Shown piece after piece: positions 4,321 to 48,000 of a stretch of DNA of 64,000 nucleotides. The DNA is taken from NCBI GenBank assembly GCA_030704615.1, contig CM060734.1, positions 58,094,001 through 58,158,000 on the forward strand. Direction: 5' to 3'. The notes under the pieces are model-generated. The model saw only the letters and a list, made by a program, of their open reading frames with translations. It did no database searches and was not told the origin of the DNA. The DNA comes from Takakia lepidozioides (Eukaryota > Plantae > Bryophyta). Position 1 is the stretch's first letter, and every line of letters begins with the position of its first letter. A program made the position numbers and the translations under genes.

Positions 4321-6457
4321 GAGGGAGGCAAGAACTGTTCTGGTACTTGTGCAGATATATGGACACTATGTAAGGCAGGACGGCTGAAAGAAGCTCTATA
4401 TATTTTGAATAAAAAAGGCATTCAGGTCGACTCCAGTACTTATATCAGTCTCTTGCAGGTGTGCATCAAGATGAATGACCTGGCAGCAGGAAAGCAGGTG
4501 CATGCCCACGTTATGCAAAGTGGATTCAAGCGAAACACTATCATACTCAACACTCTTATCAACATGTATGGCAAGTGTGGGAGCATTGTGGATGCACGCC
4601 TAGTGTTTGACAAAATGCCTGAACGGACATTGTTTACATGGACTATAATGATAGCAGGATATGCCAAGCATGGGTATGTGAGGGAGGCTTTTGAGATTTA
4701 TGAGCAAATGCAACAGGAAGGAGTGACCCCCGACAGGGTGATGTTCATTTGCATTCTTAATGCATGTGCCAGCAGAGAAGCCCTGGAGAAGGGTAAAGAG
4801 GTGCATGCTGCCATCATGGAAGCTGAAATTGTGTCATACATTAATTTGGAGAATGCCCTTATTGACATGTATTCCAAATGTGGGAGTGTAAAGGATGCGC
4901 GTGAAGTGTTTGACAAGATGGCCAAACGAGATGTTGTCTCATGGAGTGTGATGATTGCTGGATATGCCGAGAATGGGAGTGGTAGGGAGGCCTTTGGGAT
5001 CTACAAGCGGATGCAAGGGGTAAGGGTGAAGCCCAACAAGGTGACATTTATTTGCATTCTCAATGCATGTGCAAGTCTGGGAGCCCTCGAAAAGGGCAAG
5101 CAGGTCCATGCTGACATCATCAAAGCTGGAATATCATCATATATTAATTTGGAGAATACCCTTGTTGACATGTATGCCAAATGCGGGAGTGTGAAGGATG
5201 CGTGCAAAGTGTTTGACAATATGGCCCACCGAAATGTGGTCTCATGGAACGCCATGATCACAGGATATGCACAGCATGGGTATGGTAGGGAGGCTTTTGA
5301 CGTCTATGAGCAAATGCAACAGGAAGGGGTGCCACCCAACAAGGTTACTTACATTTGCATTATGAATGCCTGTGCCAGCCTAGGAGCCCTTGAAAAAGGC
5401 AAAGAGGTCCATGCAGAGATCATTAAAGCTGAAATTGAGTCGTATGTTAATTTAGAGAATAGTTCATTGACATGTATGCAAAGTGTGGGAGCCTAAAGGA
5501 TGCGCTTCAAGTGTTTGACAATATGGCTGAACGAGACGTTGTCTCATGGAGCTCGATTATCGCAGGATATGCTCAGCACGACCATGGTGATGAAGCCCTC
5601 CAATTATTTCAACAAATGCAGGATGAAGGCTTGAAGCCAAATGACGTCACCTTTGTATCTATCCTGTCTGCCTGTAGTCATGCAGGTCTACTGCATGAAG
5701 GACGTCTATACTCTGACTCCATGACTCGAAATTTTGGCGTAACACCTACAGTGGAGCATTTTGGCTGCATGGTGGACCTCCTTGGCCGTGCAGGGAAATT
5801 GGATGAGGCAGAGGAATTCATCAACAAAATGCCAACGGAAGCAACTGCTTCATTGTGGCGGGCCTTACTGAGCGCTTGCAGAATTCACGGGGATGTGGAA
5901 CTAGCTGAACGTGCGGCAAAAGCCAGTTTGAAGTGGGGCTCCATAGCACCCCGCAGCTTATGTGTTGCTGTCAAATATCTATGCTGCTGCTGGAAGATGC
6001 AATGAGAGAGCAAAGGTGAGAAAATTGATGGAGGAGAGAGGTGTCAGAAAGGAGCCAGGGCACAGCTGCATTGAGGTTGACAACCAAGTGCATACATTTG
6101 TTTTAGAAGACATTTGGCACCCACAAACTGATGAAATCCATGCTGAGCTGAAGACACTGACCAGACAGATGAAGTCTGCTGGGTTCATACCTGACACACG
6201 CTTTGTATTACATGATTTGGAGGAGCAAAAAGAGTCTTCTCTTTGCCACCACAGTGAGAAGCTGGCCATTGCTTTTGGGCTCATTAGAACTCCCCCACCT
6301 CTTGGAAGTGGTGAAATCGACTGGCATCCCGTACAACAACTGCTCGCCCCACAATCCTTGAGATAAACTTGGTGGCCGCGTGGCAATCACTGCACACCCG
6401 AAGATTCTTGATGATGTGGATTGGTGTTCCTCCTGTTCTTGTGGGGATTACTGTTGA
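4321..6457 (+). pseudogene. PLS-class DYW PPR pseudogene (4 PLS triplets, E1/E2, DYW)
   Basis: Repeating MYAKCGS / VVSWNAMIAGY motifs, KEPGHSCIEV, HSEKLAIAFGL. Frameshifts near 5465 and 5955, inversion 6298-6430 inside the DYW domain, ends CSCGDYC*. The N-terminal part (possibly from 3852) is broken by stops. Confidence 0.9.
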
Positions 6458-22266: not shown

Positions 22267-22818
22267 TGATAAGAGATGAAAAATGAGAGAAGTGGAAGAC
22301 AATGAATTCTCTCAAGCATGAAGCAATCACACTAAGAACAAGCCCTAGTCCTTCCAAGTGAAATCCATTCTATCACATAAACTAAGTCAAGCCAAGGGCA
22401 CCTTTGCTAAAGGAATCCACCCTACAAAGCCCTCAATACACTCCTTCTCAATACCTAGAGCTATAGAGGTGAAAGAGGCTTATGGAGGCTCAACTACAAG
22501 AAGATGAGCTCTCCTCCACACTCACAAGGGGAAAACCATCATCATGTCCCAAGTGAGGTTTGACACCTCACTTGGCATATGAGACCAAATGAAGTCCCAA
22601 CACCAAAAAAAATACAAATATAAATATCCAAAATGTCCTAGTTAACTAGAAGTAGGTAATTCTAGTTACTACATCGCTGTCCAAAACCACACAACACACA
22701 TGTGCACACCACACACTAGTATACCACTAGTCCATCACTAGTCCAACCACTAGGCTACAACTAGTCAGTCACTAGGCTGCCACTATGCTGCCCACTATGG
22801 CAGTCACTAGTCCACACA
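22267..22818 (-). repeat. Related, chimeric LTR in tandem with the 3' LTR of the main element
   Basis: Starts TGATAA and ends CACA on +. Shares the motifs aagtcaagccaag, ggaatccac and gaggctcaact..aagatgagc with the main LTR; its last ~150 bp (22668-22818) nearly equal 23176-23325. Confidence 0.65.
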
Positions 22819-22819
22819 A

Positions 22820-23325
22820 TGATAAAGAAGAAGAATACAAGCACAAGCTCATGCGAGGTCACAAAGCTGAAGCATAAACTCATGCATATATAACCTCATC
22901 ACTCAAATATAAGTCAAGCCAAGTGCACCCCACGCCATGGGGAATCCACACTACGGCGCCATAGCTAGGCGCCGTGAGGCTCAACTCGAGAAAGATGAGC
23001 CTCCCGCGCTTGCCGTGAAGATAACCACTCCAGGGCCTAAATCTGCCTTGACCCTTGGATTGACACTTGGGCCAATCCTAAATGTCAATATGTAAAAGCT
23101 AGCTATTTCCTAGCTAGTTTCACACTAGTGGTAAAATAACTTGACAGCTGTCGTGCGCATACATATCGCTACACAACTACATCGCTATCCAAAACCACAC
23201 AACACATGTGCACACCACACACTAGTATACCACTAGTCCAGCCACTAGTCCAACCACTAGGCTACAACTAGTCAGTCACTAGGCTACCACTATGCTGCCC
23301 ACTATGGCAGTCACTAGTCCACACA
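22820..23325 (-). repeat. 3' LTR of the main element (TG...CA), preceded on the minus strand by a short G-run PPT
   Basis: + strand TGATAAAG...CCACACA; minus strand CTAGGGGGGCAAT (23326-23338) lies directly before it. Only 22820-23146 is shared with the other LTR copy, so the right boundary is inferred. Confidence 0.7.
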
Positions 23326-23594
23326 ATTGCCCCCCTAGCTGGTGCTTGGGTCCCTCTAAGTCCAGGTAGCCACAAGATGTGATAGTGACCATAGCCTCAC
23401 TAAGTTCTCTACCACTGTCCCTACTACACTCACACTCGATACATCAAGAGGTCGGGTGCAAGAGTTGCCCCATCGTTAGTCGCTGTCTTGCAACCTGTGA
23501 ACTTGAGCCCGGGATCTCGTGTATTGACTCCTATGAGTTTGGCCTCCCATGTCTTCTTAGTTGCCTCTAATCATGTCCACTGCCACTATCCCAA

Positions 23595-23732
23595 GCAGTA
23601 TGGACATAACCAATCTCCATCAGGAACCCTCGACTCAAGAGGTGGTGTCAAGCATCCCATATGCCAACCTCTTTAGCATCGATCACACACCAGCATGGTG
23701 GCTGCCCCTTTGGCAGACTCACAGAGCATGCA
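23595..23732 (-). pseudogene. PHD finger (Cys4-His-Cys3) at the integrase C-terminus
   Basis: Reading through the TAA at 23673 gives CMLCESAKGAATMLVCDRC*RGWHMGCLTPPLESRVPDGDWLCPYC, then LG and the stop at 23586. Confidence 0.9.
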
Positions 23733-24830
23733 CCTCAAACCTGCAGGTACCACTGCCAAGTTTGGATCAACTCTGCCATCGACATTGGAAAGGTGACATG
23801 GCGCACAATTACGCACATGGTCTTTCCAAGTCATGCCATCCCGACCCTCCAAGATCAGGATTCCTGAGGGCAACACATCTCGAACCCTCAGAATAACACG
23901 TCCTGAAGTGACATCTAGGGTCGTAGGAGCAGTGTGCTGCAAATAAACATAGTCAACAGGGCTAAACCTCTGAACCCCAGGACGATATCCTCCACCACGT
24001 ATAGTGGCATACCTCAATGTATCACGGTGTTATGCAATGGTAAGGTTCTCAAAAGCCATGGGCCTGACTTTCTTGAACAACTCTGCACGCTGATCACATA
24101 CATGTACCCACACGTCCGGATCGTCAAGGTTAAGGACTTGAGCAGTGTCCCTACGAATGGCTGCAGGCAAATCCGGCTCTCGGCCAAAGAGAAGGAAATA
24201 TGGTGAGAAGGAGGCAAGTGATGCTTGTTTGCTGAACCTGTAGCCCATGGCTAACCAAGGCACCTAAAGATCCCAATCTCCTAGGTGTCCCTTCTGCAAG
24301 CCATACTTGCGCAAACCCCTCTTCACCGTCTGAACAACTCTCTCTTCCAAGCCATCGGCCTCAGGATGATCCTGAGAAGTGGTGCGGTGGTCTATCAAGG
24401 CTTTATCACACAAAACCTGAAATTCCCCCAAGAACTCTCTCCCTTGGTCCGTGAGTACCTCAGCTGGAGCACCGAATCGGCTAAGCACACGATCCAAGAA
24501 TGCATACGCAGCCCCCTCACTAGCCTTGTCAGGCAATGGAACCAACTCAATCCACTTGGAGAAGTGCTCCACCATCACCAACACATATCTGTGGTGGCGC
24601 ATAGTCAGTGACAACGGTCCTGCGAAGTCAAGACTCCACCTGTAGCCCAACCCCATGATTGGTAAAGGATGCAACTGTGGTGTAAGGGCGTTGAATGAAG
24701 CACGCACCCTATTACACACCATGCACCTAGCCACGAACTGTTGCACCTCTGTATGCATACCACGTCACCAATACTGCCCCTGCAGTAAACTGTGAGTCGC
24801 ACTCCAAAATGCCCCAACTCCTCATGGGCA
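23733..24830 (-). pseudogene. Gypsy integrase (HHCC zinc finger, DDE core, C-terminal region)
   Basis: AHEELGHFG...CMVC; WSLDFAGPL, VLTDQGREF, HPEADGL.ER; SPYFLLFGREP; in-frame stops at 24264 and 24030. Confidence 0.92.
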
Positions 24831-25199
24831 CGCTGTGTTGGGTGAGGCACGATCCTCACCCGACCATCCTCCCACACTCGAAGCAGGTGTATCCCCTCCC
24901 ACTTGAATCTCTTGGCTCGTTGTAGGATCCGATCCCTCTCCTTGGCAGTCACAGTGTCTGTCGTATCTCCCGTGCGGAGGTAGTCCAACACAGCCAAATC
25001 CTCATGTGTATCTCTGGCACCACCTGGCTCATCACTAGCCTCAGGGTCCTTAGACACTCCATCTATAGTCATCCCTGTTGTAGGTCCAACCTGACCTCTC
25101 GATGCCAATATACACAAAAATGCAGATGCCTGCCATCCCGGCACCATCTCCTCGTCCGTCTCACCATGCCACCAAGCTCCAGTGTCATCCTGCTGGCTC

Positions 25200-26330
25200 G
25201 TGCATGGATTGCGACTCAATCCATCCGCATCCCGATTGACCAAACCCGGTCGATGCACAACTTGAAAGTCATACTCCTGGAGTATGAGTGTCCACCGTGC
25301 AAGCTTCCCTGTAAGCTTGTCTGACTCCATCAACCACTTGAGTGGCTGGTGATCCGTGACAAGAGTGAAGAGATTGCCGTATAGATAGCACCTGAAGTGT
25401 GCCACGGCCCACACCGCAGCTAAGCACTCTCCCTCATATGAGCTGTACTTAGCCTCTGCAGCATTGTTCGAGCGGCTAGCATAAGCCACTACGAACTCTT
25501 TTCCCTCATCATCCACCTATGAGAGCACCGCTCCAAGCCCCAGCATGCTCCAATCCATATGCAGCTGAAATGGACGCCCCCTGATAGGTCGTCTCAGGAT
25601 AGGCGCCGAGGTCAACCTCACCTTGAGCTCCTGAAAAGCTCGTTCATGTTCATCTTCCCACTGCCACTCCTGGTCCACCTTGGTCAGCTTGGTTAGAGCC
25701 TTTGCAATAGCACTAAATCCATTGACAAACCGTCTATAATAGTTTGCCAACCCCATGAAAGCTCGAACTCGGCTCACATCCGTGGGGCGTGGAATTTGTG
25801 CAATGGCCTCTACCTTAGTCTGATGTTCCCCCAATCCTCCAGGATATATCATGTGACCCAGATACTCAATCTGGTTGTGGAAAAACTTGCACTTCCCCGG
25901 GTGTAACTTCAATCCGTGCGCTCTCAAGCGCTCCAATACCACCTGAAGGTGTCTCTCGTGCTCCTCCACTGTGCTAAAGACCTTAGCATGCCGCATGGCA
26001 TCAAAGATCTCGTCCGGTGTGGGCATGACATACTTATCGGACTTGGTCTGACGATTTACAGGCCGGTAATCATCGCACATACGTCTCTCCGTCCAATTGC
26101 CATAGACATCCTTCTTGGCTGGCATCACTGTGACTGAAGCATACTCTCCACCAGAGAGCTCCACCAAACCTGCCTCCCAGAGATCTTGAGTCCTCATCTG
26201 AATCAAAGACCTCTCCATGTCACTGTATCTATAGGGTCTCCGAAAGATTGGCGTGTCAGTGGCTAACTCAATACGGATCTCTTGACCCTTCAGTGCTCCC
26301 AAATCCTTCAAACTGAAGGCAAAGCAATTC
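25200..26330 (-). pseudogene. Reverse transcriptase (catalytic core deleted) plus RNase H
   Basis: PIFRRPYR, RMCDDYRPVN, AKVFST joined directly to VEEHERHL, KCKFF..IEYLGH, FMGLANYYRRFV, VVAYASRS, ECLAAVWA, LVTDHQPLKWL. Confidence 0.92.
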
Positions 26331-26769
26331 GTATAAGCCCTTCGGAACCGCCGTATACGTTGTCTCTCTCCTCCGGTAACAATGGGTCCAATGTCAGGCT
26401 CCCAATTGTCCTCCGTAACTGCAACCTTCAATCTAGTGGGCTTAGAGGTAGAGGACGCGTCCAGTGGTTGCTATGTTGCAACCTCTTGAGCAGTAATCCC
26501 TACCTGCTCAGTCAGTGACAATGCCTCATCCTGCCCCATCATCTCATCCTCGAGGACTTCCTCCACCCGAGAAAAATCCCTAACCTCATCCATCACCGCC
26601 ACCTTGGCTGCCAACTCCCTCTGAACCTCGAGCACCTCCCACGTGTGCCGGGATGCCTGCACCCCGTGGTCCTCACCGGCTTACCCCCACTCACTGTCTG
26701 TACCGTCTCGGTAGGCAGAGAGACCATCGAGGGAAGTGTACTCCGCACTCTGCATTGCTCAGCCATAGC

Positions 26770-27717
26770 CAAGCTGATAATCCAGGTCAAGCAATTGAGA
26801 TCCATTGCTTGCCCCAACACGTGACGACGTGATGCCTCAGAAAGAGACGACACCGCCGTGGTACCAGTGGTAAAACCCATCGCCCGCTCACGCTCGTCAG
26901 CATTAGGCTCCACTAATTGCTGCAACTGAGCATCCCATAGGAGGCCAGGTCCACTATCTCGGAAAGCATGCGATCTTGGGAAGATGAGCAGTGTAGGTAA
27001 TGCTGCTCGTGGTTGACCCATCTTGTTGATCACTGCCAAAGGCGAACGGTCATCGTGTCTCACACGCTGAGACTGCCTCCCTGTATCCAAAATGTTTATC
27101 CACTGTGAGGTGTGCTGGCCGCTGCATCCCATCAAATCCATGCTTGAGCAATCCGGGTGACATCAAGTTAGTCCACCATAGCCGTGGACGATGAACCCGT
27201 GACCCCACTGCAGCTGCATCCAACAACATTGCTGACCCAAGCCATGACCGGACTTGATGCACACTGGCCATCACCCTGGCCCGAGAATGGCTCATCACTG
27301 GCACATTCTCCAAGATGTATGCTGGAGATACAGCTTGATGAAGCTGCAAGTGGCGCAAAACCCGCACCATCTCCCAAAACAGACCCGACCTCGAGTCTTG
27401 CAATCCATTGTCATGCCCGGCTGATGAATGCCCTTGGCAGGGCCAACCTGCCACTACTAGATCAACGGAGCCAACCCGCTCCAAATCCTGCGCCCCCAGC
27501 AACGAAATGTCTGTAAGCACGCCTGCTGATATCCACGAACTGCAGACACCGTCAACAACTCAGGGTATTACTGCACCTACTGAGCAACATGACGAAGTGA
27601 AATGTGTCGTGCAGTCTCATCCCTCTCCATATACAGGTAACGCCAAATTCATACACATGGCTATAACACAGCAGCCAATCCGGTGCTGATCCCGCCAAAT
27701 AAGTCCAGAAGACAAAT
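26770..27717 (-). pseudogene. DNMT3-like C5 cytosine DNA methyltransferase domain embedded in pol between protease and RT
   Basis: Motif I LDLFGGISTGL; II RYLYMERD; III DI; IV DLVVAGWPCQGHS (Cys codon 27437-27439); V GLQDSRSGLF; VI YILENV (27302-27310); VII-VIII LDAAAVGSRVHRPRLWWTNL; IX ERERAMGF; X RRHVLGQAMD. Interrupted by several stops and two frameshifts. Confidence 0.92.
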
Positions 27718-28139
27718 GTCTTCATCCGGATACTGCCACACGATTGGTGTGGTATCCAATGGTGATAACTGAGGTGGTCCTGGTGCAATCCCCGCACTAT
27801 CCTCCTCTCCTGACAGCACAAAAGCCTCTACCCAGGCTTGTTGCACCCGTCGATCAGCAACCCGCTGCAAATCCTTGCTCGAGCCCCACAATGGAGTATG
27901 AGCAACCATGGCAGGCAACTCCGCCATACCATGCATGTCATCCTGCTCTCCTGGAGGTGACACATCCTCTGAATGAGTGTTGCCATCTAACAACTCTCCA
28001 GGCCAAGTGACTGCAGTTGTGAATGCTGCTAGTGTCGGCATCTTGCCCTGCTGGGCAACCGCAACTCCTCCTATGAACGTCACAGGGAGCTGCACACGCC
28101 GGCCCTCCCCTGACTGCCATCTAGGCCTATATGAAGCTG

Positions 28140-28460
28140 ACTCCTCCCAAAAATCCAGGGTGAAGCCCATGGGGTACAACACTGCCCCACCAACCATGAC
28201 ATTGTACGAGACCGCGTCTGTCACAATGGCCTTGGCTCGCATCACTGAGCCATCTGTAGGGTGATCCGGCCGTAGTCTGATAGCCAACGCACGCCGTGTC
28301 ATGCCCCGAGCCTACTCCGATCCTCACAGAGACGTCTGTATTTGGAAAAGACAAGGCTCCATATCCGCCTCCGTGAGGCCCAAGCCTATAATAGCAGCTC
28401 TGTCCAGCATCAATGGCTGAGCTCTCGAGTCCAACAAGAGCCGCAGTGGCCGGTACCTCT
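28140..28460 (-). pseudogene. Retroelement aspartic protease
   Basis: LLLDSRAQ (likely a mutated LLDSGA; Asp codon 28429-28431) and downstream YNVMVGGAVLYPMGFTLDF. Confidence 0.75.
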
Positions 28461-29339
28461 TGCCTGCCGGTCCACTCAAATAGAAAATGTCATCCTGGTT
28501 GTCTAACATGACAACTTCAGGTGTCACCATGGCGCGCTCAATGGCGGCCTAGCTGGCAACTCCATCAACCTGGCAGCTGCAGCTTGCCATGGCACCGCCG
28601 TGGCAGTCTTGACCCTCAAATCCGAGGATCCCTCCGGCACTACACCTCCCATTATCTCCGCAGAAGATGAAGTAACCTCCCCACTCTCACAGAGTATAGC
28701 TGCCAGCCTGAACACCTCAGCTGGTTTTACCCCCGGCGTCGCAATCATGGTAGCCGAGAACAATGGAGCCTGGCACACAGATGTGGCCGCTCCCAACAGC
28801 ACACTAGCTGCCATAGCCTTGACAACACTAGGTAGTGGTGCTGCCCATGTAGCTCTCCCCAATGACATAGTAACCTCCGCCTCGGTAACAGTAGGGCGAA
28901 AACTAGGTGCCATGGATGGCGTCGATACTGTCTCCACCAATGTGAATGACTAAGGAAGCCTGGCCTGACGGCTGGCTTCCCCACGCCGTGGATCCAACTC
29001 CACCTCTGCACCTCGTGGCTCAGGAACTCGTGCTGCTCCTCGGGTCACGGCTGCAGCAGACTCCATCTGCACTAGTGGTAGTGCTGCTCCGCACATGAAT
29101 CCCATGCCTCCTATATCTCCTCCCTCAGGAGCAGGAGGTGGACCATCCGGCCTTGGGGCCGGTACCACCTGAGCTGTAGTTATGGCAGCGAGCCTCTGCT
29201 CTAGCTGCTGAAGCCGGTTGGCCATGCCTTTGTCAACACCCTGACCTCCGCGTCCTTGGCCATGTTGAGCTTGTCCTTGGCCTGCACCTTGTGCCTGGCC
29301 ACCTCGTCCTCTCTGGGCTGCTCCACCTCCCCGACTACC

Positions 29340-30584
29340 ATTGTTCCCTTGGATCTACAACTCAGGATGCTCGTGCTTGCCACAATGCCCACACTGCAAC
29401 TGTGTAGGCTGTGCATGTGCCGACCCTTTGCCTCCCCCTGGGAAATCCTTCTTGACATGGGGTCATCCACATGTCCAACACACCACCTCAGCCCGTTGTT
29501 GGCCTACAAATGAAGGAACAGACCCCTATGTCTGAGGTCCTCTTTGTCCTTCCTTGAGCTTCACCTGAGCCCCCTTGTTGCCTTGAGCACGTTGAAGTAG
29601 TGGTTGGCTAGGAGCACCACTACCCCGTGGTGTCTCCTTAGCAAATCCCACCATGACCACTCGTTCATCCACTATGTTGAGCTCTATCCGCTCTGCCAAC
29701 AAAAACACATTTGCTAAGGTGGGTTGGGCCGCTTGTAGGAAAGTTGCATCCCGCACCCTTCTCCTCAGCTCCTTGTCCAATATCCTACACCAGAATTGGA
29801 CTGCCTGAGCTTCCGTAACCCCTTGGGTTACATTTATCAAGCGCCTCATGCGAGTGAAAGCCTCCCTCAAGCTCTCAGTCGGCTTCTGTTGGAACTATTG
29901 CAAGCTCCGCAACTTCTCTGTCCTCACCTCTTGGTAGTTCCCTTTCAACTCTTTGAAGAACTCCACAACAGGGTTGAAGGCAGGCACGGGTACTGGTGAT
30001 GGTGCGGTAGTGGCTTGGGTGGACGTCGTAGCTACGGTACCACCAGTTCCACTAGTCCCACTGCTGCTTGCTGAAGCTGCCGGTGCAGCAACAGGTGTAG
30101 CCACTGCCCTCGTGACTCTAGTGCCCCTAGTGATGGAGACATAGTCGGGTGACCAGTACATCCTCCACTCCTCGATCTCAACCTCATGCCATCGCCTGTA
30201 ATCATCCATAGGCGGCCCCTCAAGGTGCTGAAACAGCCCCTTCCATGCCATGAAAGACGTAAATAGTTGTGGATTGCGCATTTGCTGCAAATCACACCAA
30301 CTATCAAACTCTTGGATAAAATCATCCAACTCGATGGTGCCCACCGCCCTAGAGTACCTTTGTGGCCTATTGGTAGCTCCATACATCTCCTCCATTGTGT
30401 CCCACAACAATGGCAAGGAAACAAATTGTACCGCCGGTGTGAGTCCTCTTGATTCACAATCCGATTCAGAACCTTCCGTAGAAGATACAGGAGGTGAATG
30501 TGGCCTAAACCGCACACCTCGTCTCGTGTACCCACTAGTATTGCTAGTGCTCGAACCGGCACTGTCCCCAGCAACTAGTGGCAC
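29340..30584 (-). pseudogene. Gag with two degenerate zinc knuckles
   Basis: KLRSLQ*FQQKPTESLREAFTRMRRL resembles the Gag core motif; CWTCG*PHVKKDF and CGHCGKHEH lie downstream. Confidence 0.75.
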
Positions 30585-31254
30585 TTCCGTGTTGACAAAC
30601 TGTCACTCAACCGGTCATGAACATGTCCCTAACCCCCTCTCCACAAGGTAACCGAGTAGAGGATCTGTTGCGGCTTATGGTTTGGAATACTAGGTTCCTA
30701 ACATAGCCTACACCTGCACCTGCATCCACCGCAAGCACTCCTATGGTTGGCTGATCATCACCTCCAACCTCACCACAAGAGAAACAATGATGGTCTGACT
30801 GGTCATCACCCCAGCCTCACCATCGACAACATGCTCTAGGACTGGCCGGTGATCAAATCCGGACCAATCACCTATAAAAACAAGCGCCCACACAAAACTA
30901 ACATGGCGCACAGTCAAGCATGCAGGTATGAAGGGGATCTAAACACAAAAAATCAGAACGACAACTCCCCCACACCAAAAACAACTCCACGGTGTTGCTC
31001 CTGCAATGACACCCCAACCCAAACCTGGACTGACTCTTGCCTCCACCTACGGAAAGGTCTTGGCCTAATGAGAGGGTGGAAAACTACGAGGAAGAGAAGC
31101 TAAAGCAATGCCTAACCCAAGCATGCCCTCATCCCAACACTCTTCATCTCCTCTCTTTCCTCACTTGCATGACCATGGGAATATCATGAAGATATTCCTC
31201 AAACCGCCCTCCACGAGTGTCAAAATTCGGCCTTCAAGTCCACATGCCAGTCCT

Positions 31255-31945
31255 AGGCAGTCCACCAGTGCCTCCACGAGTCAGCACAGGCCATCCACAG
31301 GTCAGCACAGGCCGTCCACAGGTCAACTCGGGCCACCACAGACCAGCACAGGCCCACACAGATCACAGGCTACAGCCCCACAGCCCATCACAGCCCCAAA
31401 GGCCACAGGTCACAGCCTGTCACAGCCTGTCACAGCCCTACACAGGTCACAGGATCACAGCTCCACAGGCCATAGCCTGTCAGAGCCCCAAAGGCCACAT
31501 GTCACAGCCTGTCATAGACCGTCACAGCCCCAAAGGCCACAGGGCACAGCCTATCACATCCTGTCACAGCCGTACACAGGTCACATGGTCACAGCCCCAC
31601 AGGCCACAGCCTGTCACAACCTATCATAGCCCATCAAAACCCCAAAGGCCACATGGCACAGCCTGTCACAGCCCCTCATAGCCCCAAATGCCACATGTCA
31701 CAGTCACAGCCTATCATAGCCCCTCACAGCCCCAAAGGCCACAGGCACAGCCCATCACAACCTGTCACAGCCCCTCACAGCCCCACAGGCCACAGGGCAC
31801 AACCCATCACAGCCTGTCACAGCCCCACAGGCCACAGGGCACAACGTGTCACAACCCGTCACAGCCCCACAGGCCACAGGGCACAACTTGTCACAGCCCA
31901 TCACAGCCCGTCATAGCCCCACATGCCACATGGCATAGCCATCCA
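31255..31945. repeat. Degenerate minisatellite (CACAGCC / GTCACAG / CACAGGC) in the retrotransposon leader
   Basis: Dozens of cacagcc, tgtcacag and ggccacag units; this explains the spurious ORFs at 31108-31966. Confidence 0.9.
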
Positions 31946-32399
31946 TGGCCACTCATGGCAGTTTAGCCATTTCTCCAAGGGGTTTAGCCATGCCAAGCTA
32001 GGGGGTTTGTGTCTCTTGGGCTCTAGGCTTCTTTGCACCGAGCTATGGCGGTTGTGAGGAAATCAACAAGGTATTCTTGCTATTTATGGCCCCCACACAC
32101 CACCAATAGTAGCTCTAATTCCAAAGGAAGATATTTACAACCGAAACTAAGTGCACAAGCTTCCTTTTAACTCACAAAACAACGCCATTGATCCCTATGA
32201 CGACTAACCAAACATGGTTGACTTCCAACCCTTGTAGGCACTCATTCACGTGCTTTTCTTGACCATAGCATGCCCTTCACACCTAATCCAGCCCCTGCAC
32301 CTGCTGCTTCAAGAGTTGTGCTCCCTTCAAGCTTGAAGTTGAAACCCCAACTCACATAGGCCCTACAAGTGCTTTTATTTCACCCCTAGTGGAAACCAG

Positions 32400-32710
32400 C
32401 CCTAGCCCTTCCGTTCTAGCTCTCTAAAGCTTGAAAACAAGAGCCTCAATGGGCTGAAGGCATGCTCCACACATGCCCCACTCTCACCATAAGAGAATCA
32501 GTTCCTTCCTTCCTTTCTTGCACTCCCAAACCTGAAAGTACAAGCCTTCAATAGGCTGAAAGCATGCTCCACATATGCATTGCCCTCACATAAGAGAAGT
32601 CAGCCCTTCCCTCTTCCTTGCTTGCCCTCCAAGCTTGAAGATGGAAGCTTCAATGAGCTGAATACATGCTCCACACATGCAACCTCTTCACACAAGAGGT
32701 ATCAGCCCCC
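32400..32710. repeat. Three diverged tandem copies of a ~102-bp unit in the retrotransposon leader
   Basis: The anchor catgctccac occurs at 32461, 32563 and 32665, each preceded by caat..gctgaa and followed by aagag..tcag. Confidence 0.8.
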
Positions 32711-33374
32711 TATCTTGGCTCCTTGGCTCCTTGATGCTCTCTAAGACAAGACTAAGCACTCCACAGCCTTTGCCAAGCTCTTGAAACCCTAAGGCTTACA
32801 TTTCCAGCTACAAGACACTCCTCTTGTGGTGCAAGAGCTCTTCTTCCAAGCTCTGAAACCCTAGGTGCACATTCCATGGCCTTGCCGCACCTCTTAGCTC
32901 TTGTTCCAGCCCTGCTCTTGCCATGACAAGAGCCCTCTCAATGCTGAAACTCGGGATTGAAACCCAATCTCAACATACTCCACAAAGTGCACTGATTGCC
33001 CCAAGCCAAATCAGCCCTTTTGCTTGGTCTTGCAATCCTTCACACAATGAAAGCTCACATTCCCAAGTCCAGTTCTCAGCTTTGCCACCAAAGCCACTCT
33101 AACCTGCTCTTGACTGGTCCTCTTTCCAATCGTGCTTGCTCATTCATGTACACAATCTGAAACCATCAAGGTGCTCTGCCTGCAGCATGATGCTTTCATC
33201 TCTGAAGCTGAAGATCGAATGCCAAGGTCTACTACCTCGTAACCCACATCGCCTCCGCTTCTAACAACCAAGAGCTCCACGGTGCTCATTGCATAATAAC
33301 CTGGTTTCTCTCATTCTCAAGCAAAAACCACAAGTGCTACAACTAACTCGTATCTGACACTCATAGATACGAGT

Positions 33375-33388
33375 TCATCTTTCTCGAG
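33375..33388 (-). promoter_or_regulatory. Candidate self-priming primer-binding site
   Basis: The 14 nt abutting the 5' LTR (+ tcatctttctcgag) are the perfect reverse complement of LTR-internal 33546-33559 (ctcgagaaagatga). There is no TGG tRNA-type start. Confidence 0.7.
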
Positions 33389-33707
33389 TGATAAAGAAGA
33401 AGAATACAAGCACAAGCTCATGCGAGCTCACAAAGCTGAAGCATAAACTCATGCATACATCACTCAAATACAAGTCAAGCCAAGTGCACCCCACGCCATG
33501 GGGAATCCACATTACGGCGCCATAGCTAGGCGCGGTGAGGCTCAACTCGAGAAAGATGAGCCTCCCGCGCTTGCCGTGAAGATAACCACTCCAGGGCCTA
33601 AATCTGCCTTAACTCCTGGATTGACACTTGGGCCAATCCCAAATATCAATATGTAAAAGCTAGCTATTTCCTAGCTAGTTTCACACTAGTGGTAAAATAA
33701 CTTGATA
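33389..33707 (-). repeat. 5' LTR of the main element, probably truncated at its outer end
   Basis: Near-identical to 22820-23146 (roughly ten substitutions and one short indel by eye); abuts an older integrase remnant. Confidence 0.9.
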
Positions 33708-34625
33708 TGTGACATCCAAGGTCGTTGGTGCTGTCTGCTGCAGATACACGTAGTCCCCATAATAGAAACGCCAAACCCTTGGACGATATCCCCCTCCACA
33801 TATAGTGATATATCTCAATGTGTCTCGGTGTTGGGCAATAACAAGGTTCTCAAAAACCATAGACATTACTCTCTTGAAGAACTTTGTCCGCTGGTCACAT
33901 GCCTGTGTCCATACATCCGGATCATCAAGGTTGAGGACTAATGCAACCTCCCTACGAAAAGATGCAGATAAATCTGGTTCTCGGCCGAAGAGAAGAAAGT
34001 AAGGTGAGAACGAGGCAAGTGATGCTTGCTAAACTTGTAGCCCATGACCAACCAAGGTAGCTGAAAGGTCTTAATCCCCTAAATGTCCCTTCTGCAAATC
34101 ATACTTGCGCAAGCCTCTCTTGACTGTCTGAACAACTCTCTCCGCCAAGCCATCAGCCTCAGGATGATCCCGAGAAGTAGTGCGGTGGTCTATCAAGGCT
34201 TGCTCACACAAAGCTTGAAACTCCCCCAAGAACTCTCTCCCCCGGTCCGTGAGTACCTCGGCTGGAGCACCAAATCGGTTAAGAACTCGATCTAAGAATG
34301 CATACGCAACCCCTTCACTTGCCTTGTCAGGCAATACCACTAGTTCAATCCATTTGGAGATGTGTTCCACCATCACCAACACATACTTGTTATGACGAAT
34401 CGTTAATGACAATGGGCCTGTGAAGTCAAGATTCCAACGATAGCCCAAACCCATAATGGGTAAATGATGCAACTGTGGGGTAGGTGCATTGAGTGAAGCA
34501 CGCATCCTATCACACACCATGCACCTAGCCACTAACTGTTGCACATCCGTGTGCATGCCCCGCCACCAGTATTGTCCTTGCAGCAAACTATGAATACGCC
34601 GCACCCCAAAATGTCCCAACTCCTA
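33708..34625 (-). mobile_element. Integrase remnant of a second element of the same family
   Basis: GHFGVRRIHSLLQGQYWWRGMHTDVQQLVARCMVC...WNLDFTGPL...LTDRGREF...YVYLQQTAPTTLDVT, closely paralleling 23905-24830. Confidence 0.92.
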
Positions 34626-34997
34626 ATGGATTGATGGAAACGATGTGTGGAGATCCTTGTGGAACAATAAGTACAATAACAAGTTCAACATCCTCCATGT
34701 TCAACTACGAATCCTTCATCGAATAAAAAATAAGAAAAATAAAAATCCTTCACAAATTAGCTCAGCCTCTAAAATAAACCACAATTCAATCAAAACCCCG
34801 TACCCTAATTGTTAAACCCTGTCTTGCTTGGAGGTAATCCTCAAGCCCTAAATTTTTTGCTGGCTAGTGAAAGTAAATGGGACTTCTCTCCCTCTCTCTT
34901 TCTCTCTCTAACTTGTTTTGCAGGGAAAGGCATCAGTACATGCTCTAACTTCTTCATTCTGTTATCTTTCTTTCTCTCTCTCTCTCTCTCTCTTTCT

Positions 34998-36340: not shown

Positions 36341-36981
36341 TACACACACACACACACTCTCTCTCTCTCCCTCTCTCACAACTGCCTTGACGAAGTTAGG
36401 CATAAAACTTCCCTGAACTTATTTCCAGTTTGTGACATGGGTGAGGACCTTAAGGATGATTGAGGGCCTACCTATGATTGGTGCTAGACTGAAATTTAAA
36501 TTCAGGGCCGGGAGTTTTCCTTTGAACAATAAACAGATGCAGAGAGGAGAGGGAGATTGTCAACGCCCAATTTGCGGGCGGCCTGAAGATTGATACAATG
36601 ACTGAATTGTATCCGTTTTGCTGATACAATGTCCCGAGGTACTCTCATCAAAGAGAAACCCTTTTCAGGACCATTGAGAATGTAGTCCCTGAACCTGGCA
36701 TGTAGGTGCAGGGGGTAGGTGGGCACAGATTGTCCGGTCAGTATTTCGAAATTGTAAAACCCAATTTTGCAGCAGGGGGTCGTTTTCCTGGATAGAAAGT
36801 CAGACTACCCCGGGGGCGTTTAGGGGTTAAACAACCAGTTCCAATCAAAAGAGACGCTCACATTGCCATTCGCAAAAACCAGTGTGGCAAGAAACTACGA
36901 AAACACTGGAAAAATTCACGACACCATTCAATTGAGACACTGGGAATTGATGGCCAACTGGAGGCAGCAGCACAGTTGACT

Positions 36982-39900
36982 ATGGCAGGCAGTCCCACGA
37001 CAACAAGCGCGTCGTTCATACAACCAAGCCACAAGATCGATTCTGGGACTTGTGGGCATGTGAGGACACTATGTGAGGCAGGACAACTGAAAGAGGCTCT
37101 GCACATTTTGAACCAAGGAAGCATTTTGACCAACTCTGATACTTATTTGTGTCTCTTGCGAAAGTGCATCAATGTGAAGGGCTTAGCAGTAGGAAAGCAG
37201 GTCCATGCCCACATTATGAAAAGTGGATTCAAGCCGAACGTGTTTCTGTACAACACCCTTGTCAAAATGTATGTCAAGTGTGGGAGCATCATGGATGCAC
37301 ACCGAGTGTTTGACAGGATGCCTCAACGAGATATGTTTTCATGGACTATAATGATGGCAGGATACACCAAGCATGGGTGTGGTAAAAAAACCTTGGAGAC
37401 CTATGAGCAAATGATCCAGGAAGGGGCAACACCCAACCAGGTCACATTCGTTTGCGTCCTCAAGGCATGTGCGAGCGTGGCAGACCTTGAAAAAGGCAAA
37501 GAGGTCCATGCTGACATTGTGAAAGCTGGAATTGTACCAAATATGATTCTGAATACCACCCTTGTGGATATGTATGCAAAATGCGGGAGCATTGAGGATG
37601 CAAAGGTAGTGTTTGACAGTATGGCTGAAAGAAATGTGGTGTCCTGGAATGCGATGATCGCAGGATGTGCCCAGCATGGCTATGGGTTGGAGGCATTGGA
37701 GATCTATGGGCAAATGAACCGGGAAGGGGTGAAGCCAGACCAGGTCACATTTGTTTGTATTTGCAATGCCTGTGCGAGCTTGGCAGACCTGGAAAAGGGC
37801 AAAAAGTTCCATGCTGAGATCATTAAAGCTGGATTTGTACCAGGTGTCATTCTGAACACATCCCTCATGGACATGTATGCCAAATGCAGGAGCATCAAGG
37901 ATGCAAAGAGAGTGTTTGACAACATGGCTGAACGAAATGTGGTGTCATGGAACGCGATGATTGCAGGATATGCCCAGCATGGATGTGGGATGGAGGCTTT
38001 GGAGACCTATGAGCAAATGATGCAGGAAGGGGTGAAACCAGATCACGTCACGTTCGTTGCCGTTTGCAATGCTTGTGCGGGCCTGGCAGCCCTGGAAAAT
38101 AGCAAGGAGGTCCATGCCAACATCATGAAAACTGGAATTATACCACGTCTGATCTTGAACAATACCCTTGTGGACATGTATGCCAAATGTGGGAGCATGA
38201 AGGATGCAAAGGGAGTGTTTGACAATATGACTGAACGAGATGTGGTCTCATGGAGTGCGATGATCGCAGGATATACTCAGGATGGGAGTGGAATGGAGGC
38301 TCTGGAAACCTATGAGCAAATGATGCGGGAAGGGGTGAAACCCAACCAGGTCACATTTGTTGGCGCTTGTAATGCATGTTCAAGCCTGGCAGACCTAGAA
38401 AAGGGCAAAGAGGTCCATAATAACATCCTGAAATCTGGAATTGTTCCACATACGATTCTGAGCAATGCTCTCATGGACATGTATGCCAAATGTGGGAGCA
38501 TCAAGGATGCAAAGAGAGTTTTCGACAGCATGGCTGAACGAAATGTGGTGTCCTGGAATGCGATGATTGCAGGATATGCCCAGCACGGCTGTGGGTTGGA
38601 AGCTTTGGAGGCCTATGAGCAAATGATGCAGGCAGGGTTGAAACCAGACCAGGTTACGTTTGTTGGTGCTTGCAGTGCATGTGCTAGCCTGGCAGCTCTA
38701 GAAAAGGGCAAAGAGGTCCATGGTGACATTGTGATAGCTGGAATTGTACCACATCTGATTCTGAACAATACCCTGGTGGACATGTATGCCAAATGCGGGA
38801 GCATCGGCAATGCAAAGGGAGTGTTTGACAATATGGCTAAACGAGATGTGATATCATGGAATGCGATGATCGCAGGATATGCCCAGCATGGGAGTGGCAT
38901 GGAGGCTTTGGAGACCTATGAGCAAATGATGTGGGAAGGGGTGAAGCCAGACCAGGTCACATTTGTTTGTGTTTGCAATGCGTGTGCCAGACTGGCAGAC
39001 CTGGAAAAGGGTAAAGGGGTCCATGCTGACATCATTAAAGGTGGAATTGTACCAAATATGATTCTGGACACTGCCCTTGTGGACATGTATGCCAAATGTG
39101 GGAGCATCAAGGATGCAAAGGGAGTGTTTGACAACATGGCTGAACGAAATGTGGTGTCATGGAGTGCCATGGTCGCAGGATATGCTCAGCATGGGAGGGG
39201 GACAGAGGCTTTGGAGACCTATGAGCAAATGATGCGTGAAGGGGTAAAGCAGGACCATGTTACGTTTGTTTGCGTAGCCAAGGCATGTGCCAGCCTGGCA
39301 GCCCTGGAAAAAGGCAGAGAGGTTCATGGCGACATCATTAAAGCTGGAATTGTACCAGATGTCATTCTGGACACTGCCCTTGTGGACATGTACGCCAAAT
39401 GCGGGAGCATCGAGGATGCAAAGGGAGTGTTTGACAGTATGGCTGAACGAAATGTGGTGTCATGGAATGCGATGATAGGAGGATATGCCCAGCATGGTTT
39501 TCATAGGGAGGCCCTGCAACTATTTGAATGCATGCAAAAGGAAGGCTTGAAACCAAACAGTATCACCTACACATGTGTTCTCTCTGCATGTAGCCATGTT
39601 GGTCTTGTGGATGAGGGCAGACACTACTTTGATTCCCTTAGTAATAATCATGGCCTCACCCCTACTGCGAAGCATTGTGGCTGCATGGTGGACCTTCTTG
39701 GCCGTACAGGGCGATTGGATGAGGCGGAGGACTTCATTAACAAAATGCCAATCAAACCGGATGCTGTTGTGTGGAGGGCCTTGCTTGGTGCCTGCAGAGT
39801 TCATGGCAATGTGGAGGTGGCAGAACGTGCAGCAAAATGTGTTCTCAAGTGGGATGTACAGGATGCTGGAACTTATGTGTTGCTATCAAACATCTATGCT

Positions 39901-40377
39901 GCAGCTGGCAGGTGGGATGACACTGCAAAGGTGAGACGAATGATGAAGGTCAGAGATGTCAAAAAGGAGCCAGGTCGCTGCCGCATCGAGGTCGGCAATG
40001 GGATGCACACCTTTGCTGTCGATGACAGATTGCATCCACAGATTGAGGAAATCCATGCTGAGCTGAGAAGATTGTCTGGGCAGATGAAGGAGGCAGGGTA
40101 CTTGCCTGACACACGCTTTGTGTTGCATGATATGGAGGAGCAACATAAGGAATATTCTCTCTGCCACCACGGTGAGAAGCTGGCCATTGCTTTTGGGCTT
40201 ATAAGCACAGCCCCTGGGACGCCCCTCCGTATCATCAAGAACCTTCGGGTGTGTGGTGACTGCCACACGGCAACCAAGTTCATCTCAAAGATTGTTGGGC
40301 GAGTAATTGTTGTACGGGATGCCAACCGCTTTCACCACTTCAAAGATGGGATTTGTTCTTGTGGGGAGTACTGGTGA
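36982..40377 (+). CDS. PLS-class DYW PPR protein (organellar C-to-U RNA editing factor), intact reading frame
   Basis: Eight L-S-P triplets at 303-nt period, then L2/S2, E1/E2, KKEPGRCRIEV, HGEKLAIAFGL, KNLRVCGDCH, FHHFKDGICSCGEYW*. First in-frame ATG is 36982; an upstream exon is possible. Confidence 0.95.
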   Translation: MAGSPTTTSASFIQPSHKIDSGTCGHVRTLCEAGQLKEALHILNQGSILTNSDTYLCLLRKCINVKGLAVGKQVHAHIMKSGFKPNVFLYNTLVKMYVKCGSIMDAHRVFDRMPQRDMFSWTIMMAGYTKHGCGKKTLETYEQMIQEGATPNQVTFVCVLKACASVADLEKGKEVHADIVKAGIVPNMILNTTLVDMYAKCGSIEDAKVVFDSMAERNVVSWNAMIAGCAQHGYGLEALEIYGQMNREGVKPDQVTFVCICNACASLADLEKGKKFHAEIIKAGFVPGVILNTSLMDMYAKCRSIKDAKRVFDNMAERNVVSWNAMIAGYAQHGCGMEALETYEQMMQEGVKPDHVTFVAVCNACAGLAALENSKEVHANIMKTGIIPRLILNNTLVDMYAKCGSMKDAKGVFDNMTERDVVSWSAMIAGYTQDGSGMEALETYEQMMREGVKPNQVTFVGACNACSSLADLEKGKEVHNNILKSGIVPHTILSNALMDMYAKCGSIKDAKRVFDSMAERNVVSWNAMIAGYAQHGCGLEALEAYEQMMQAGLKPDQVTFVGACSACASLAALEKGKEVHGDIVIAGIVPHLILNNTLVDMYAKCGSIGNAKGVFDNMAKRDVISWNAMIAGYAQHGSGMEALETYEQMMWEGVKPDQVTFVCVCNACARLADLEKGKGVHADIIKGGIVPNMILDTALVDMYAKCGSIKDAKGVFDNMAERNVVSWSAMVAGYAQHGRGTEALETYEQMMREGVKQDHVTFVCVAKACASLAALEKGREVHGDIIKAGIVPDVILDTALVDMYAKCGSIEDAKGVFDSMAERNVVSWNAMIGGYAQHGFHREALQLFECMQKEGLKPNSITYTCVLSACSHVGLVDEGRHYFDSLSNNHGLTPTAKHCGCMVDLLGRTGRLDEAEDFINKMPIKPDAVVWRALLGACRVHGNVEVAERAAKCVLKWDVQDAGTYVLLSNIYAAAGRWDDTAKVRRMMKVRDVKKEPGRCRIEVGNGMHTFAVDDRLHPQIEEIHAELRRLSGQMKEAGYLPDTRFVLHDMEEQHKEYSLCHHGEKLAIAFGLISTAPGTPLRIIKNLRVCGDCHTATKFISKIVGRVIVVRDANRFHHFKDGICSCGEYW

Positions 40378-45078: not shown

Positions 45079-48000
45079 ATGGCACACGTGCCTGCTGTGC
45101 TTCAGGCTGCAGCTCAGGATGTGTCTACTGCCTCCACCAAACAGCGGATTTCCATTTTTTCGGCGAGCATTCCGTCTGCTCTTGACTCTGCAGGTACTGT
45201 GCGGTGCAGTTCATGGCTTCATTCTTGCTTCTGCTGTTGTTTTGCGCTGCCTGCAACCCGATTTTTTCGAGATAGCAGCAATGGTCGGAGTGTTTTGATT
45301 TTGCTGACTCCTATGTTTTTGGTCATGGGGCTCTCTGACAGCTGTACGTTGAGCTAAATGTGGTCTCTGCAGAACTCTAAAGCAGAAGAGTTCTGTGCAG
45401 CATCCGTACATGGCCTACTGACATGTACTTTGCTGGCAGAATTGTTCCTGTTGTCAATGCTAGATCATCTCTGGGCATGTTGGCGGCCTGAGAAAGGTTA
45501 AAAGGTTCTAGATTGCATGTCTTGGAGACTGAAGAGAGTGGAGAGTTGCGAGTGAAGGAATTTGTGGCAGTGTAAATTGGAAGGGACATGACATGCTGTC
45601 ATTGGACGGGTGCTTGCTGCAGTTTGATGTTGATTCTGTTAACCTTAAAGCAAAAGTAACAGGGATGGGGGACTGAATGGGATCCTCAATTTATTTATTG
45701 CTTTTTAGGATCTGCTGACAGATAACTCACAGTAGCAACTGCACCACGATCAAGCTACTTACCCTTGGAAAGTAAATAGCATTTTAGTTGGCCATTCAGT
45801 ACGCCGGGCCATGCGCACCGGAGGACAACCTCAAACTGACATCAACAAATGCAAGTTATAGACCATATTGAGTATCTTGCACAATAATGAATTGGGTGAC
45901 AAATGCTCCCCTCAGCTTTCGTGCTGGGCAATTTAGAAATTGGTTGCCCATTTTACTTTGCCAAATTCCTTGCACACCTTTCAGAACCATCATATTTTGT
46001 TCCTTGGGAGGAAAAGGAAAAATGACCTCACGAAAATTGTCCGCATCTTTAACACAATCCCTGGTGACAAGCTTGGTGTCAAAGGCAAATGCCGATCATG
46101 AAAATATCTGTTAAGTTGTTCCTCATGAAATCTCTTGAGCTTCGCTGGTTGAAGAATACTAGCCCCACTTGCATTTCTTTCAGATTGCCACAAGGGGAAC
46201 AACTTACAGGGTTTGCCCACACAGGTTGCAGTTTGTCTACTGTGCACTCAGGTGTTTCATTGTAACTATGAATCACACTTAAGATTGTGGTCTCATCAAT
46301 CTATATGTTGTTAATCCAGATACGTTTTCAACTTTATGTCTGACTTGCAGGGGACAGCATTGGGGAGTATGTGGTGGACCTAGTGGATGTCATTTTTTCT
46401 ACGTTGTCACTCTATGAAGACCGGGCATCTCAAGCAGCTGTGGAGCATGTTATATCAAAGGCCCTAAAGGAGCCTACCTTTGTGAAGGCATTTGCAGGAG
46501 TACTTGTGCAAACTGCTGAGAGTTCATGCAGGGCAAGTAGTGGTGCAGTGCAGTTAAAGCTGCTAAGGTGGTCATGCCTGCTTATCAGTCACAATCCTGC
46601 CCTAATGTCAGCCAAGTCTGCCTTCTCCAGGGTGGCAGCGATGCAGGCTTCTCTTCTCTCTTTGCTCTTCCAGGCCTCCTTTCGTTTGCAACGATCGAGT
46701 CGGCACATCTTCTTGCGCCAGCTTTCTAAGGTGTATTGCCTTTATTTTTTGGCAGATTATACTGTGATTTGTCTCATTACGTGTTCCATCCATTTATAAC
46801 ATGATTCAAGAAGACAGATTTTCAGTTGTACTAAAATTTGAAGGCATTTGTAAACTAGTTGTGCCGTTGATCGAGATTATGCTAATTGAACAATTGTGCT
46901 CCACAGGTTGATGATCTTTTTGAGCACTATGTCTCTGAGCTACGGGGGTCTGCCTTGGGCTTAGAGAGCAGCAGTGGTCTGATCAGGATGCTACTAGACT
47001 TCTGTGTGGGAAAGCCGCCGTTGGTTGAGATGCATAAGGTGAAGTCTCTTACTAGGTGTTTATGGTTTGTGCTGCTGGGAGTGTTTGCTAATTTGGAACA
47101 AGAGATGTATCCTCATACCTGCTTGTGCTGATTCTTCTCTAAATGCTATTCATGTGCCAGTGACTACGGCTGGGTGAGAATCGCTTTGGAGCTGAGGCAG
47201 TTTGATTAGCAGATGAAGTGCATGCACTGTGTGGTAGGATGTGCATCTATTTTACCTTCAAATCAAACAGTGTTTGGGCTAAAGTATGGTTTTCACTTTG
47301 TAAGCAGTAGTTTAACAATGTGGTTTGCTGCTGACTTCTGCCCATAGGCCTGGTTTCTGGAGTTATACATCAAGCTCGTTTTGACCTCAAGAGAAAAGCC
47401 ACCCAAAGCATTGACTCTAGCCTTTCGGCCCCTGCTGCAAGAGTTGACACATGATGAGTTCGGCAAAACCGTGGTGCCGACTGCAGGGAAGATGTTGAAG
47501 AGGAATCCAGAGCTGGTCATGGAAGCTGTTAGCCTTCTCTTGACATTCATAAGCCTGGATCTTAGCAAGTACACCGCAGAATTATTGCCCACTGTACTGC
47601 TGCAGGCCCGCCATACAGATGAGGCACGGCGCAAGGAGGCTCTTGCCGTCCTGACCCACTTGGCTTCTCATTCGAGTGACCTCGATGCTGTCTCTGCCAT
47701 GTTTCAGTCTATCAAATCTGTTTTCGCAGGTTTCACTTGCTTTCTCTCTCTCATAGACTCACCCTCCTACTTACACATCTCTTTCCTGTTGTTTCCTTAC
47801 ATCTGTGTATCTTGTTATCTTGGATGTGGGTGTATTATTTATCTTTGTTTACCTCTCAAATGTGAGTTCAGAAATTACTAGGCTATCACATTGATATATC
47901 TTGCGTTTCTGCTGTGCAGTGTGGGTCTAAGATGGCAAGGTATTACAGTAAAAATTTACTGACAGGGTCTTGGCACTGCTAGTGTATGAATGAACCTACA

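Follow-up and report, generated by a model that had tools for sequence, protein, structure and literature searches.

A dead Ty3/Gypsy-type element encoding a DNMT3-type methyltransferase in the genome of the bryophyte Takakia lepidozioides

DNA methylation is the main weapon of the host against transposons, and a transposon that itself carries an enzyme for de novo methylation is a paradox. To our knowledge, transposon-borne DNMTs have been documented so far in dinoflagellates and in one charophyte alga, and for none of them do we know of a proven function. The same paradox is raised by a stretch of 64,000 nucleotides of Takakia lepidozioides (GenBank assembly GCA_030704615.1, contig CM060734.1, positions 58,094,001 to 58,158,000 of the forward strand; hereafter the window, with positions counted from its first letter), where an original prediction made from the sequence had placed, on the minus strand, a Ty3/Gypsy retrotransposon with a DNMT3-like cytosine methyltransferase inside pol. 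Does the enzyme really belong to the mobile element, and what could it do there? The best explanation for the whole locus, and in our opinion a very probable one, is a dead copy of a high-copy land-plant Ty3/Gypsy family encoding Gag, protease (PR) and a DNMT3-type enzyme, followed by a TAG codon in a leaky context, by reverse transcriptase (RT), RNase H (RH) and integrase (IN) with a PHD finger, and bounded by split-repeat ends. The Gypsy-DNMT3 kind of element has been known since 2018, and its land-plant member is new.

The methyltransferase and its place in the polyprotein

The DNMT3-like C5 cytosine methyltransferase domain occupies positions 26776-27747 of the minus strand, and is supported by the Pfam family PF00145, tblastn, the residues kept, and profile and fold matches to DNMT3A/B/C. 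The predicted interval, 26770-27717, does hold the domain, but its start lies about 30 nt above the upper coordinate, at 27747. A three-frame translation distributes it over 27747-27610 (with two stops inside), 27529-27053 and 27096-26776. Motif I (LDLFGGISTGL) is found at the end of the open reading frame (ORF) 27661-28302, which it shares with the C-terminus of the protease as had been proposed, and RYLYMERD comes downstream of two in-frame stops after motif I. The motifs PCQ, ENV and RPRLWW lie in a second frame (ORF 27050-27520), and ERERAMGF and LGQAMD in a third one (ORF 26593-27141). All motifs quoted in the prediction could be located, in the canonical order (I, IV, VI, VIII, IX, X) and between protease and RT. 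The middle piece alone matches PF00145 (DNA_methylase) with 54.8 bits (cutoff 22; E 1.3e-14), and an open relative, P0157, is colinear in tblastn with 27747-26776 through all three frames.

The surrounding coding parts, all on the minus strand, are those of a Gypsy element. A gag with CCHC knuckles and several in-frame stops covers 28546-30584 (three-frame translation, and tblastn of the gag of Marchantia polymorpha), followed by an aspartic protease at 28147-28545 with the active-site region LLLDSRAQ, which is 51% identical to that of a Marchantia copy, aligns to the protease of the relative P0184 and is separated from the DNMT by a linker. Downstream of the DNMT, the nine bases TAG-CAA-CCA (26465-26473) make an in-frame stop at the boundary with the RT; then come RT and RNase H (24803-26440) and the integrase with its C-terminal PHD finger (23595-24797), which is 54% identical to P0184 through the PHD of the latter and whose finger is interrupted by a stop. 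Pfam matched RVT_1, RT_RNaseH, RT_RNaseH_2 and rve on pieces of the window, which together with PF00145 bears out the profile check that had been suggested for DNA_methylase, RVT_1 and rve, and gag, protease and PHD finger were placed through tblastn to relatives. The order typical of Gypsy pol, PR-RT-RNase H-IN, is seen in the window pieces, with the full set in relatives. The integrase is of the rve type, with Integrase_H2C2 among the domains of the element and its relatives, and no phage-integrase (tyrosine recombinase) match appeared in the Pfam scan of window pieces or open relatives.

How general is this arrangement? A search of the 156-aa middle DNMT piece against 1.8 billion representative proteins gave 3735 matches, and many of the best ones are long polyproteins. 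Two of them come from metagenomes and are open throughout: in P0157 (2327 aa) and in P0184 (2358 aa), zf-CCHC or protease precedes DNA_methylase, RVT_1, RNase H and integrase, and P0184 has in addition a C-terminal PHD. When five domains were mapped onto 115 long matches, two classes of architecture emerged: PR-DNMT-RT-RH-IN(-PHD), as in the window (class I, whose open polyproteins span 2300-2370 aa), and RT-RH-DNMT-IN-PHD (class II). Full-length DNMT domains number 45 in class I and 94 in class II, the latter including P0038, P0073, P0109, P0212 (Monoraphidium), P0386 (Haematococcus) and about 90 others. The named members of class I are streptophytes, Closterium among them, and those of class II are chlorophytes (Monoraphidium and Haematococcus).

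These comparisons bear on one of the alternatives, in which a Gypsy element would merely lie beside a host DNMT3 gene or pseudogene, or would have received a DNMT fragment as a private later insertion. The window copy taken by itself could hint at such a foreign origin, with its DNMT in three frames and a stop between DNMT and RT. Nevertheless, dozens of relatives, open ORFs included, have these domains in the same order and at the same spacing, and so do two Marchantia insertions, each flanked by its own target-site duplication. In a DNA run of the source organism, 29,114 contigs (at least 85% identity) fall on 25500-28600 and fill every bin of the DNMT just as they do for RT and protease; in a second organism, under a different label, one contig of 2754 nt likewise runs colinearly through RT and DNMT. 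The frame breaks near 26649, 27095 and 27518 coincide with single-base indel differences to other copies, as read from contigs of public runs, and a repeat search in the window found no repeat boundaries around the domain. The order shared by dozens of relatives, the contig cover of all bins and the lack of such boundaries together mean that the DNMT is not a private insertion, and a chance juxtaposition, already refuted by the family comparison, is extremely improbable. We therefore confirm the DNMT as an integral, intron-free part of the polyprotein of this family. The prediction had held just this and had named two findings that would speak against it; instead, a profile match exists, and other copies of the family carry the domain colinearly, at least 45 relatives sharing the order and some of them being fully open.

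What kind of methyltransferase is it? A profile built from 20 domains of the family finds DNMT3A/B/C as its best match (E ~1e-24), colinear along motifs I-VIII, followed by DRM (1e-16 to 1e-13, as a permuted partial match), M.HhaI (1e-9) and DNMT2 (1e-8), with no DNMT1 or chromomethylase (CMT) chains among the matches listed for this profile. With a single open domain as query, the best solved relatives are DRM and DNMT3A/B. DRM aligns in two swapped pieces, and thus the DNMT of the element is not circularly permuted. An AlphaFold model of the domain of P0184, a metagenomic relative and not the window copy, reached a mean pLDDT of 92.9 and a pTM of 0.92; the 50 best Foldseek matches to this model are without exception DNMT3A, 3B or 3C (E ~1e-19, 20-24% identity), including DNA-bound DNMT3 structures matched along the entire domain, with a target-normalised TM of ~0.82-0.85 against isolated catalytic-domain chains and lower values against longer chains. 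The eukaryotic DNMT3A/3B/3C, which share the motif order of the element and are its best profile and fold matches, differ from it in their sequence (21-24% identity) and their setting, since here the domain stands in a retroelement polyprotein without an adjoining PWWP or ADD. Neither of these N-terminal readers gave a Pfam match in window pieces or open relatives, where the sole reader domain is the PHD after the integrase. The plant DRM1/2 are the closest plant relatives with solved structures and show a similar motif I wording (LFSGIG), but they are circularly permuted, with motifs VI-X before I-V, in contrast to the canonical order of the element. The wording of the prediction, DNMT3-like and unlike the permuted DRM, is upheld by both the profile ranking and the swapped alignment of DRM.

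The residues tell a similar story. A set of 67 relatives has 35 columns with at least 90% conservation; when the window DNMT is read through with an X at each frame break or stop, it retains 32 of them, including the catalytic Cys, ENV and RxR. Among 20 aligned domains, drawn from class I and class II and averaging 43% identity, the Cys of GW-CQ, EN(V), R-R, W and N are invariant, and so are ERE...G of motif IX and the G of motif X. Motif IV reads GWPCQG, with the canonical Pro-Cys, in the window, in Marchantia and in P0366, and GWECQG in most other relatives of both classes. This last variation, the failure of Pfam on some copies and the negative or inconclusive yeast assay of the domain of the alga Klebsormidium (PMC5890265) could be taken to mean that the domain no longer methylates DNA and is kept for RNA methylation, for binding of S-adenosylmethionine (SAM) or nucleic acid in the particle, or as a structural part of the polyprotein. 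We find this quite unlikely, given that the catalytic Cys, ENV, RxR and the residues of motifs IX and X do not vary across the two classes and that the fold model follows DNA-bound DNMT3 structures along the whole domain. The family domain is better described as a non-permuted DNMT3-type C5 methyltransferase, apparently competent for catalysis.

Relatives in bryophytes and algae

The closest named relatives of the DNMT are three gene models of Marchantia polymorpha (MARPO_0063s0090, Mp_6g11220 and MARPO_0084s0073), followed by BDL97_09G086500 of Sphagnum fallax, all annotated only as "hypothetical protein". The prediction knew of no characterised land-plant family, and none is indeed named in the literature searched; the family was nonetheless already visible in these unnamed models of M. 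polymorpha and S. fallax. We found no report of a land-plant Gypsy-DNMT3, or of these Marchantia models by name, in a search whose coverage left out most subscription journals, and a 2026 preprint cites only the 2018 work for "streptophyte Gypsy-DNMT3".

The Marchantia and Sphagnum models share with the window element the gag-PR-DNMT part, the TAG-CAA-CCA, the RT-RH-IN-PHD part and the ends of type A-internal-B-A-B. They differ from it in the leader, and the Marchantia copies have the complete 3' end and the target duplications that the window copy lacks. The identity between window and Marchantia copy is 40-46% in gag, 51% in the protease, 65-75% in the DNMT core, 53% in RT-RH and 80% in IN-PHD (~68-73% at the DNA level). 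With 65-75% in its core against 40-51% in gag and protease, the methyltransferase is among the better-kept parts of the element. In a quick tree of 68 DNMT rows (LG+G4, unrooted), a clade of four rows (support 100) contains the Marchantia pair with the window as its sister (SH-aLRT 95), and the DNMT domains of class II form a single clade, also with support 100.

The described system closest in kind is KnitGypsy-Dnmt3 of Klebsormidium nitens, the Gypsy-DNMT3 type reported by de Mendoza et al. in 2018 (PMC5890265). Compared through its published description, it has in common with our element the Gypsy-type pol, an intron-less, non-permuted DNMT3-type domain within the polyprotein and conserved catalytic residues. 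The host is here a land plant instead of a charophyte alga, and the copy number is very high, whereas K. nitens has few copies (PMC5890265). The main text of that paper makes no mention of a PHD finger, of the conserved TAG, of 4-bp duplications or of a self-complementary primer site. No K. nitens polyprotein is among the named matches listed in our search, where the nearest named alga is Closterium.

The presence of an abundant family in a land-plant genome, with near-complete copies in the model liverwort Marchantia polymorpha and also in Sphagnum, moves the question of transposon-borne DNMTs to organisms that can be transformed and for which methylomes and mutants exist. The census of host enzymes is touched as well. 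Counts of plant DNMT3 genes based on domains may be inflated by such elements, and Pfam-based surveys of plant DNMTs may in turn miss copies: of the three Marchantia models, P0383 (Mp_6g11220) and P0385 (MARPO_0084s0073) contain the DNMT domain by alignment but gave no Pfam match at E 0.001.

Stop codon, split-repeat ends and decay

The prediction had placed the DNMT inside pol. It is a part of the polyprotein between protease and RT, as stated, but it belongs to a gag-PR-DNMT unit upstream of the TAG and not to the RT-IN part. Both Marchantia copies have the identical nine bases TAG-CAA-CCA in the corresponding position (11844 of locus L008 and 11846 of locus L007), and many relatives are gag-PR-DNMT ORFs of ~1330 aa that terminate shortly after the DNMT. 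In relatives, RT, RNase H, DDE integrase and PHD continue in the same frame after the TAG. A UAG followed by CAR-YYA is the leaky-stop context of tobamovirus, and from this likeness we infer readthrough of the TAG. As a separate observation, all nine stops in the polyprotein frame of L007 and L008 together are TAG, including the conserved TAG-CAA-CCA in each, and the seven others are premature.

The element as a whole, a dead Ty3/Gypsy-type copy that is full-length in extent, runs for ~11 kb on the minus strand from 33707 to 22668. A classical pair of long terminal repeats (LTRs) was searched in the window and in locus L001 and was not found. Where Ty3/Gypsy elements typically have two identical LTRs, this one shows the layout A1-internal-B1-GC-A2-B2, all on the minus strand: repeat A1 makes the 5' terminus (33389-33707); repeat B1 (23149-23327) has a purine run upstream (G6, 23330-23335) and the dinucleotide GC and A2 downstream; repeat A2 (22820-23146) is ~95% identical to A1; and repeat B2, the 3' terminus (22668-22819), is ~96% identical to B1 and lacks roughly its last 27 nt. 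The junction B1-GC-A2 forms the palindrome GACAGCTGTC, that is, two ends joined. A1 starts with TA where A2 has TG, and beyond B2 the sequence shifts to 34% GC. With the last ~27 nt missing from B2 and with A1 starting with TA, a target-site duplication is unreadable in the window. Two Marchantia insertions (AP019871.1 and KZ772735.1) have an identical A-internal-B-GC-A-B layout (repeats at 5123-5412 and 15144-15663 of L007, and at 5289-5539 and 16123-16599 of L008), with a complete 3' end and the same palindromic end-junction inside; their termini are TG...CA, and the target duplications, of 4 bp, read CCCT and GGGG. These duplications, together with the rve domain, point to an insertion by a DDE integrase.

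This layout connects the element with the DIRS-like ones (of PAT/Ngaro type, and SymbioDIRS-Dnmt3), which share the A-internal-B-A-B order and the internal copy of the joined ends, although they use a tyrosine recombinase, in contrast to the DDE integrase found here and the TG...CA ends and 4-bp duplications of the Marchantia copies. The order A-coding-B-A-B has been stated for SymbioDIRS and, by reference, for KnitGypsy-Dnmt3, which shares it with our element (legends of Figs 1e and 4c, PMC5890265). It may arise in one of two ways: either a circle with both ends joined is opened at the palindrome, or the internal junction serves as the template for the ends.

Directly after A1, 14 nt (33375-33388, minus strand) are a perfect complement of 33546-33559 inside A1, and make up a candidate Tf1-type self-priming site. 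The Marchantia copies have a complement of 11-12 nt at the same two places, after A1 and inside A1, with different letters on both sides. The complement, of 11-14 nt, is therefore perfect in all three copies, and the compensating differences between window and Marchantia amount to covariation. This fits self-priming of the Tf1 type, a pairing that would place the start of the transcript near position 149 of A.

Two further sequences touch the ends but do not settle their structure. L003 (1-18357; ENA ERZ25067493, contig name ending in _c) is an open class I element with PHD, arranged in 2.2 head-to-tail units of 8262 nt with 99.8% identity and without internal repeats; it might represent a tandem array or, alternatively, a circular form as assembled. 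In L004, direct and inverted repeats are intermingled in a complicated way.

Between A1 and gag there is a long non-coding leader of 2.8 kb (30585-33374, minus strand; ~2.3 kb between A1 and gag in the Marchantia copies), whose sequence is not conserved with respect to the Marchantia copies. It contains tandem repeats with periods of 42 nt (31337-31980) and 102 nt (32407-32681). Long plus-strand ORFs in the leader are a by-product of the tandem repeat.

The copy in the window is dead, as predicted: the DNMT is spread over three frames with two stops, gag and PHD contain stops, and ~230 nt of the RT are gone. This last deletion appears as a tblastn gap at 25969/25970, and contigs from two public runs have 232-233 additional letters exactly there. 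Despite the breaks, 32 of the 35 conserved DNMT columns are kept, and on this sequence evidence the decay is young in comparison with the family itself. Most differences within the family of the window are transitions, and the window has A/T more often where other copies have G/C.

Possible roles and host surroundings

If the TAG is indeed leaky, the Gag-PR-DNMT unit upstream of it would be made at Gag-like levels, and RT-IN-PHD by occasional readthrough only. The methyltransferase would then be carried in the particle as part of Gag-PR-DNMT, where it could methylate de novo the new DNA of the element, or else its landing site, while the integrase-PHD might read histone tails to choose or mark that site. 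We put forward this self (cis) methylation as the function of the enzyme in a tentative way, with a confidence somewhat short of even.

The same features allow a different reading, where a genuine domain kept by selection would work in trans: its target would be host chromatin or the neighbourhood of the insertion rather than its own cDNA, and the heterochromatin built there would throttle the element or its competitors. An enzyme encoded upstream of the stop would be in excess over RT and IN, the PHD finger on the integrase is a histone reader, and the huge abundance of the family makes effects in trans plausible, an option already discussed in PMC5890265. On the other hand, no CpG or CWG depletion specific to the element was seen, the observed/expected depletion being genome-wide, and the methylome of Klebsormidium is not unusual despite its elements (PMC5890265). 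We hold action in trans to be rather unlikely.

Several points weigh against an active role in cis or against parts of the overall explanation. We know of no activity shown for any Gypsy-borne DNMT3, and the readthrough is argued from sequence context only. In yeast, no methylation was obtained with the Klebsormidium domain, a result that its authors call inconclusive as human DNMT3B failed too (PMC5890265). No run recorded as RNA contains the stretch in a search of public runs; one run guessed to be RNA has contigs of 90-95% over parts of it, which proves nothing. All window and Marchantia copies examined carry premature stops, and give no support for a current activity in land plants. Finally, the DNMT tree has no outgroup of host DNMT3 or DRM, and a capture from a host DNMT3 is argued from the profile and fold rankings and from the 2018 phylogeny.

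A bolder proposal would join all these pieces into a distinct replication and chromatin strategy of the bryophyte Gypsy-DNMT3 elements, more than a Gypsy element to which one domain was added: Tf1-like self-priming, an internal B-GC-A palindrome GACAGCTGTC that regenerates the ends in a DIRS-like manner, a DDE integrase that nevertheless inserts the element and leaves duplications of 4 bp, a DNMT3 at Gag levels methylating the new DNA in the particle, and a PHD picking the chromatin. As a complete scheme we consider it unlikely. If true, the role of transposon-borne DNMTs would become directly testable in the genetically tractable Marchantia.

The plus strand of the window also contains host genes: an intron-less class-3 alcohol dehydrogenase (ADH; 1616-2974), pentatricopeptide repeat (PPR) ORFs (4405-6002), a PPR-E-DYW gene (36976-40374) and exons of GCN1 (47381-58377). 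The PPR-E-DYW gene encodes an editing factor of 1133 aa with an E motif and a DYW deaminase. DYW-type PPR proteins are a hallmark of land plants and are not known from marchantiid liverworts, which argues against a marchantiid host. The ADH is closest to those of mosses, with 87% identity for Sphagnum and 86% for Ceratodon, against 84% for Selaginella and 75-78% for liverworts. From these sequences the host genome is that of a bryophyte-grade land plant, and the PPR-E-DYW, ADH and GCN1 genes in the same window mean that the element is embedded in such a genome.

Outside this copy, a related element has left an older piece of its integrase (33711-34631, minus strand; tblastn), which is 81% identical in nucleotides to 23908-24827; this piece directly adjoins the 5' end of the DNMT element, and no continuation of it was found beyond the 3' end. 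The ADH, besides having no introns, carries an N-terminal extension and is possibly a retrocopy.

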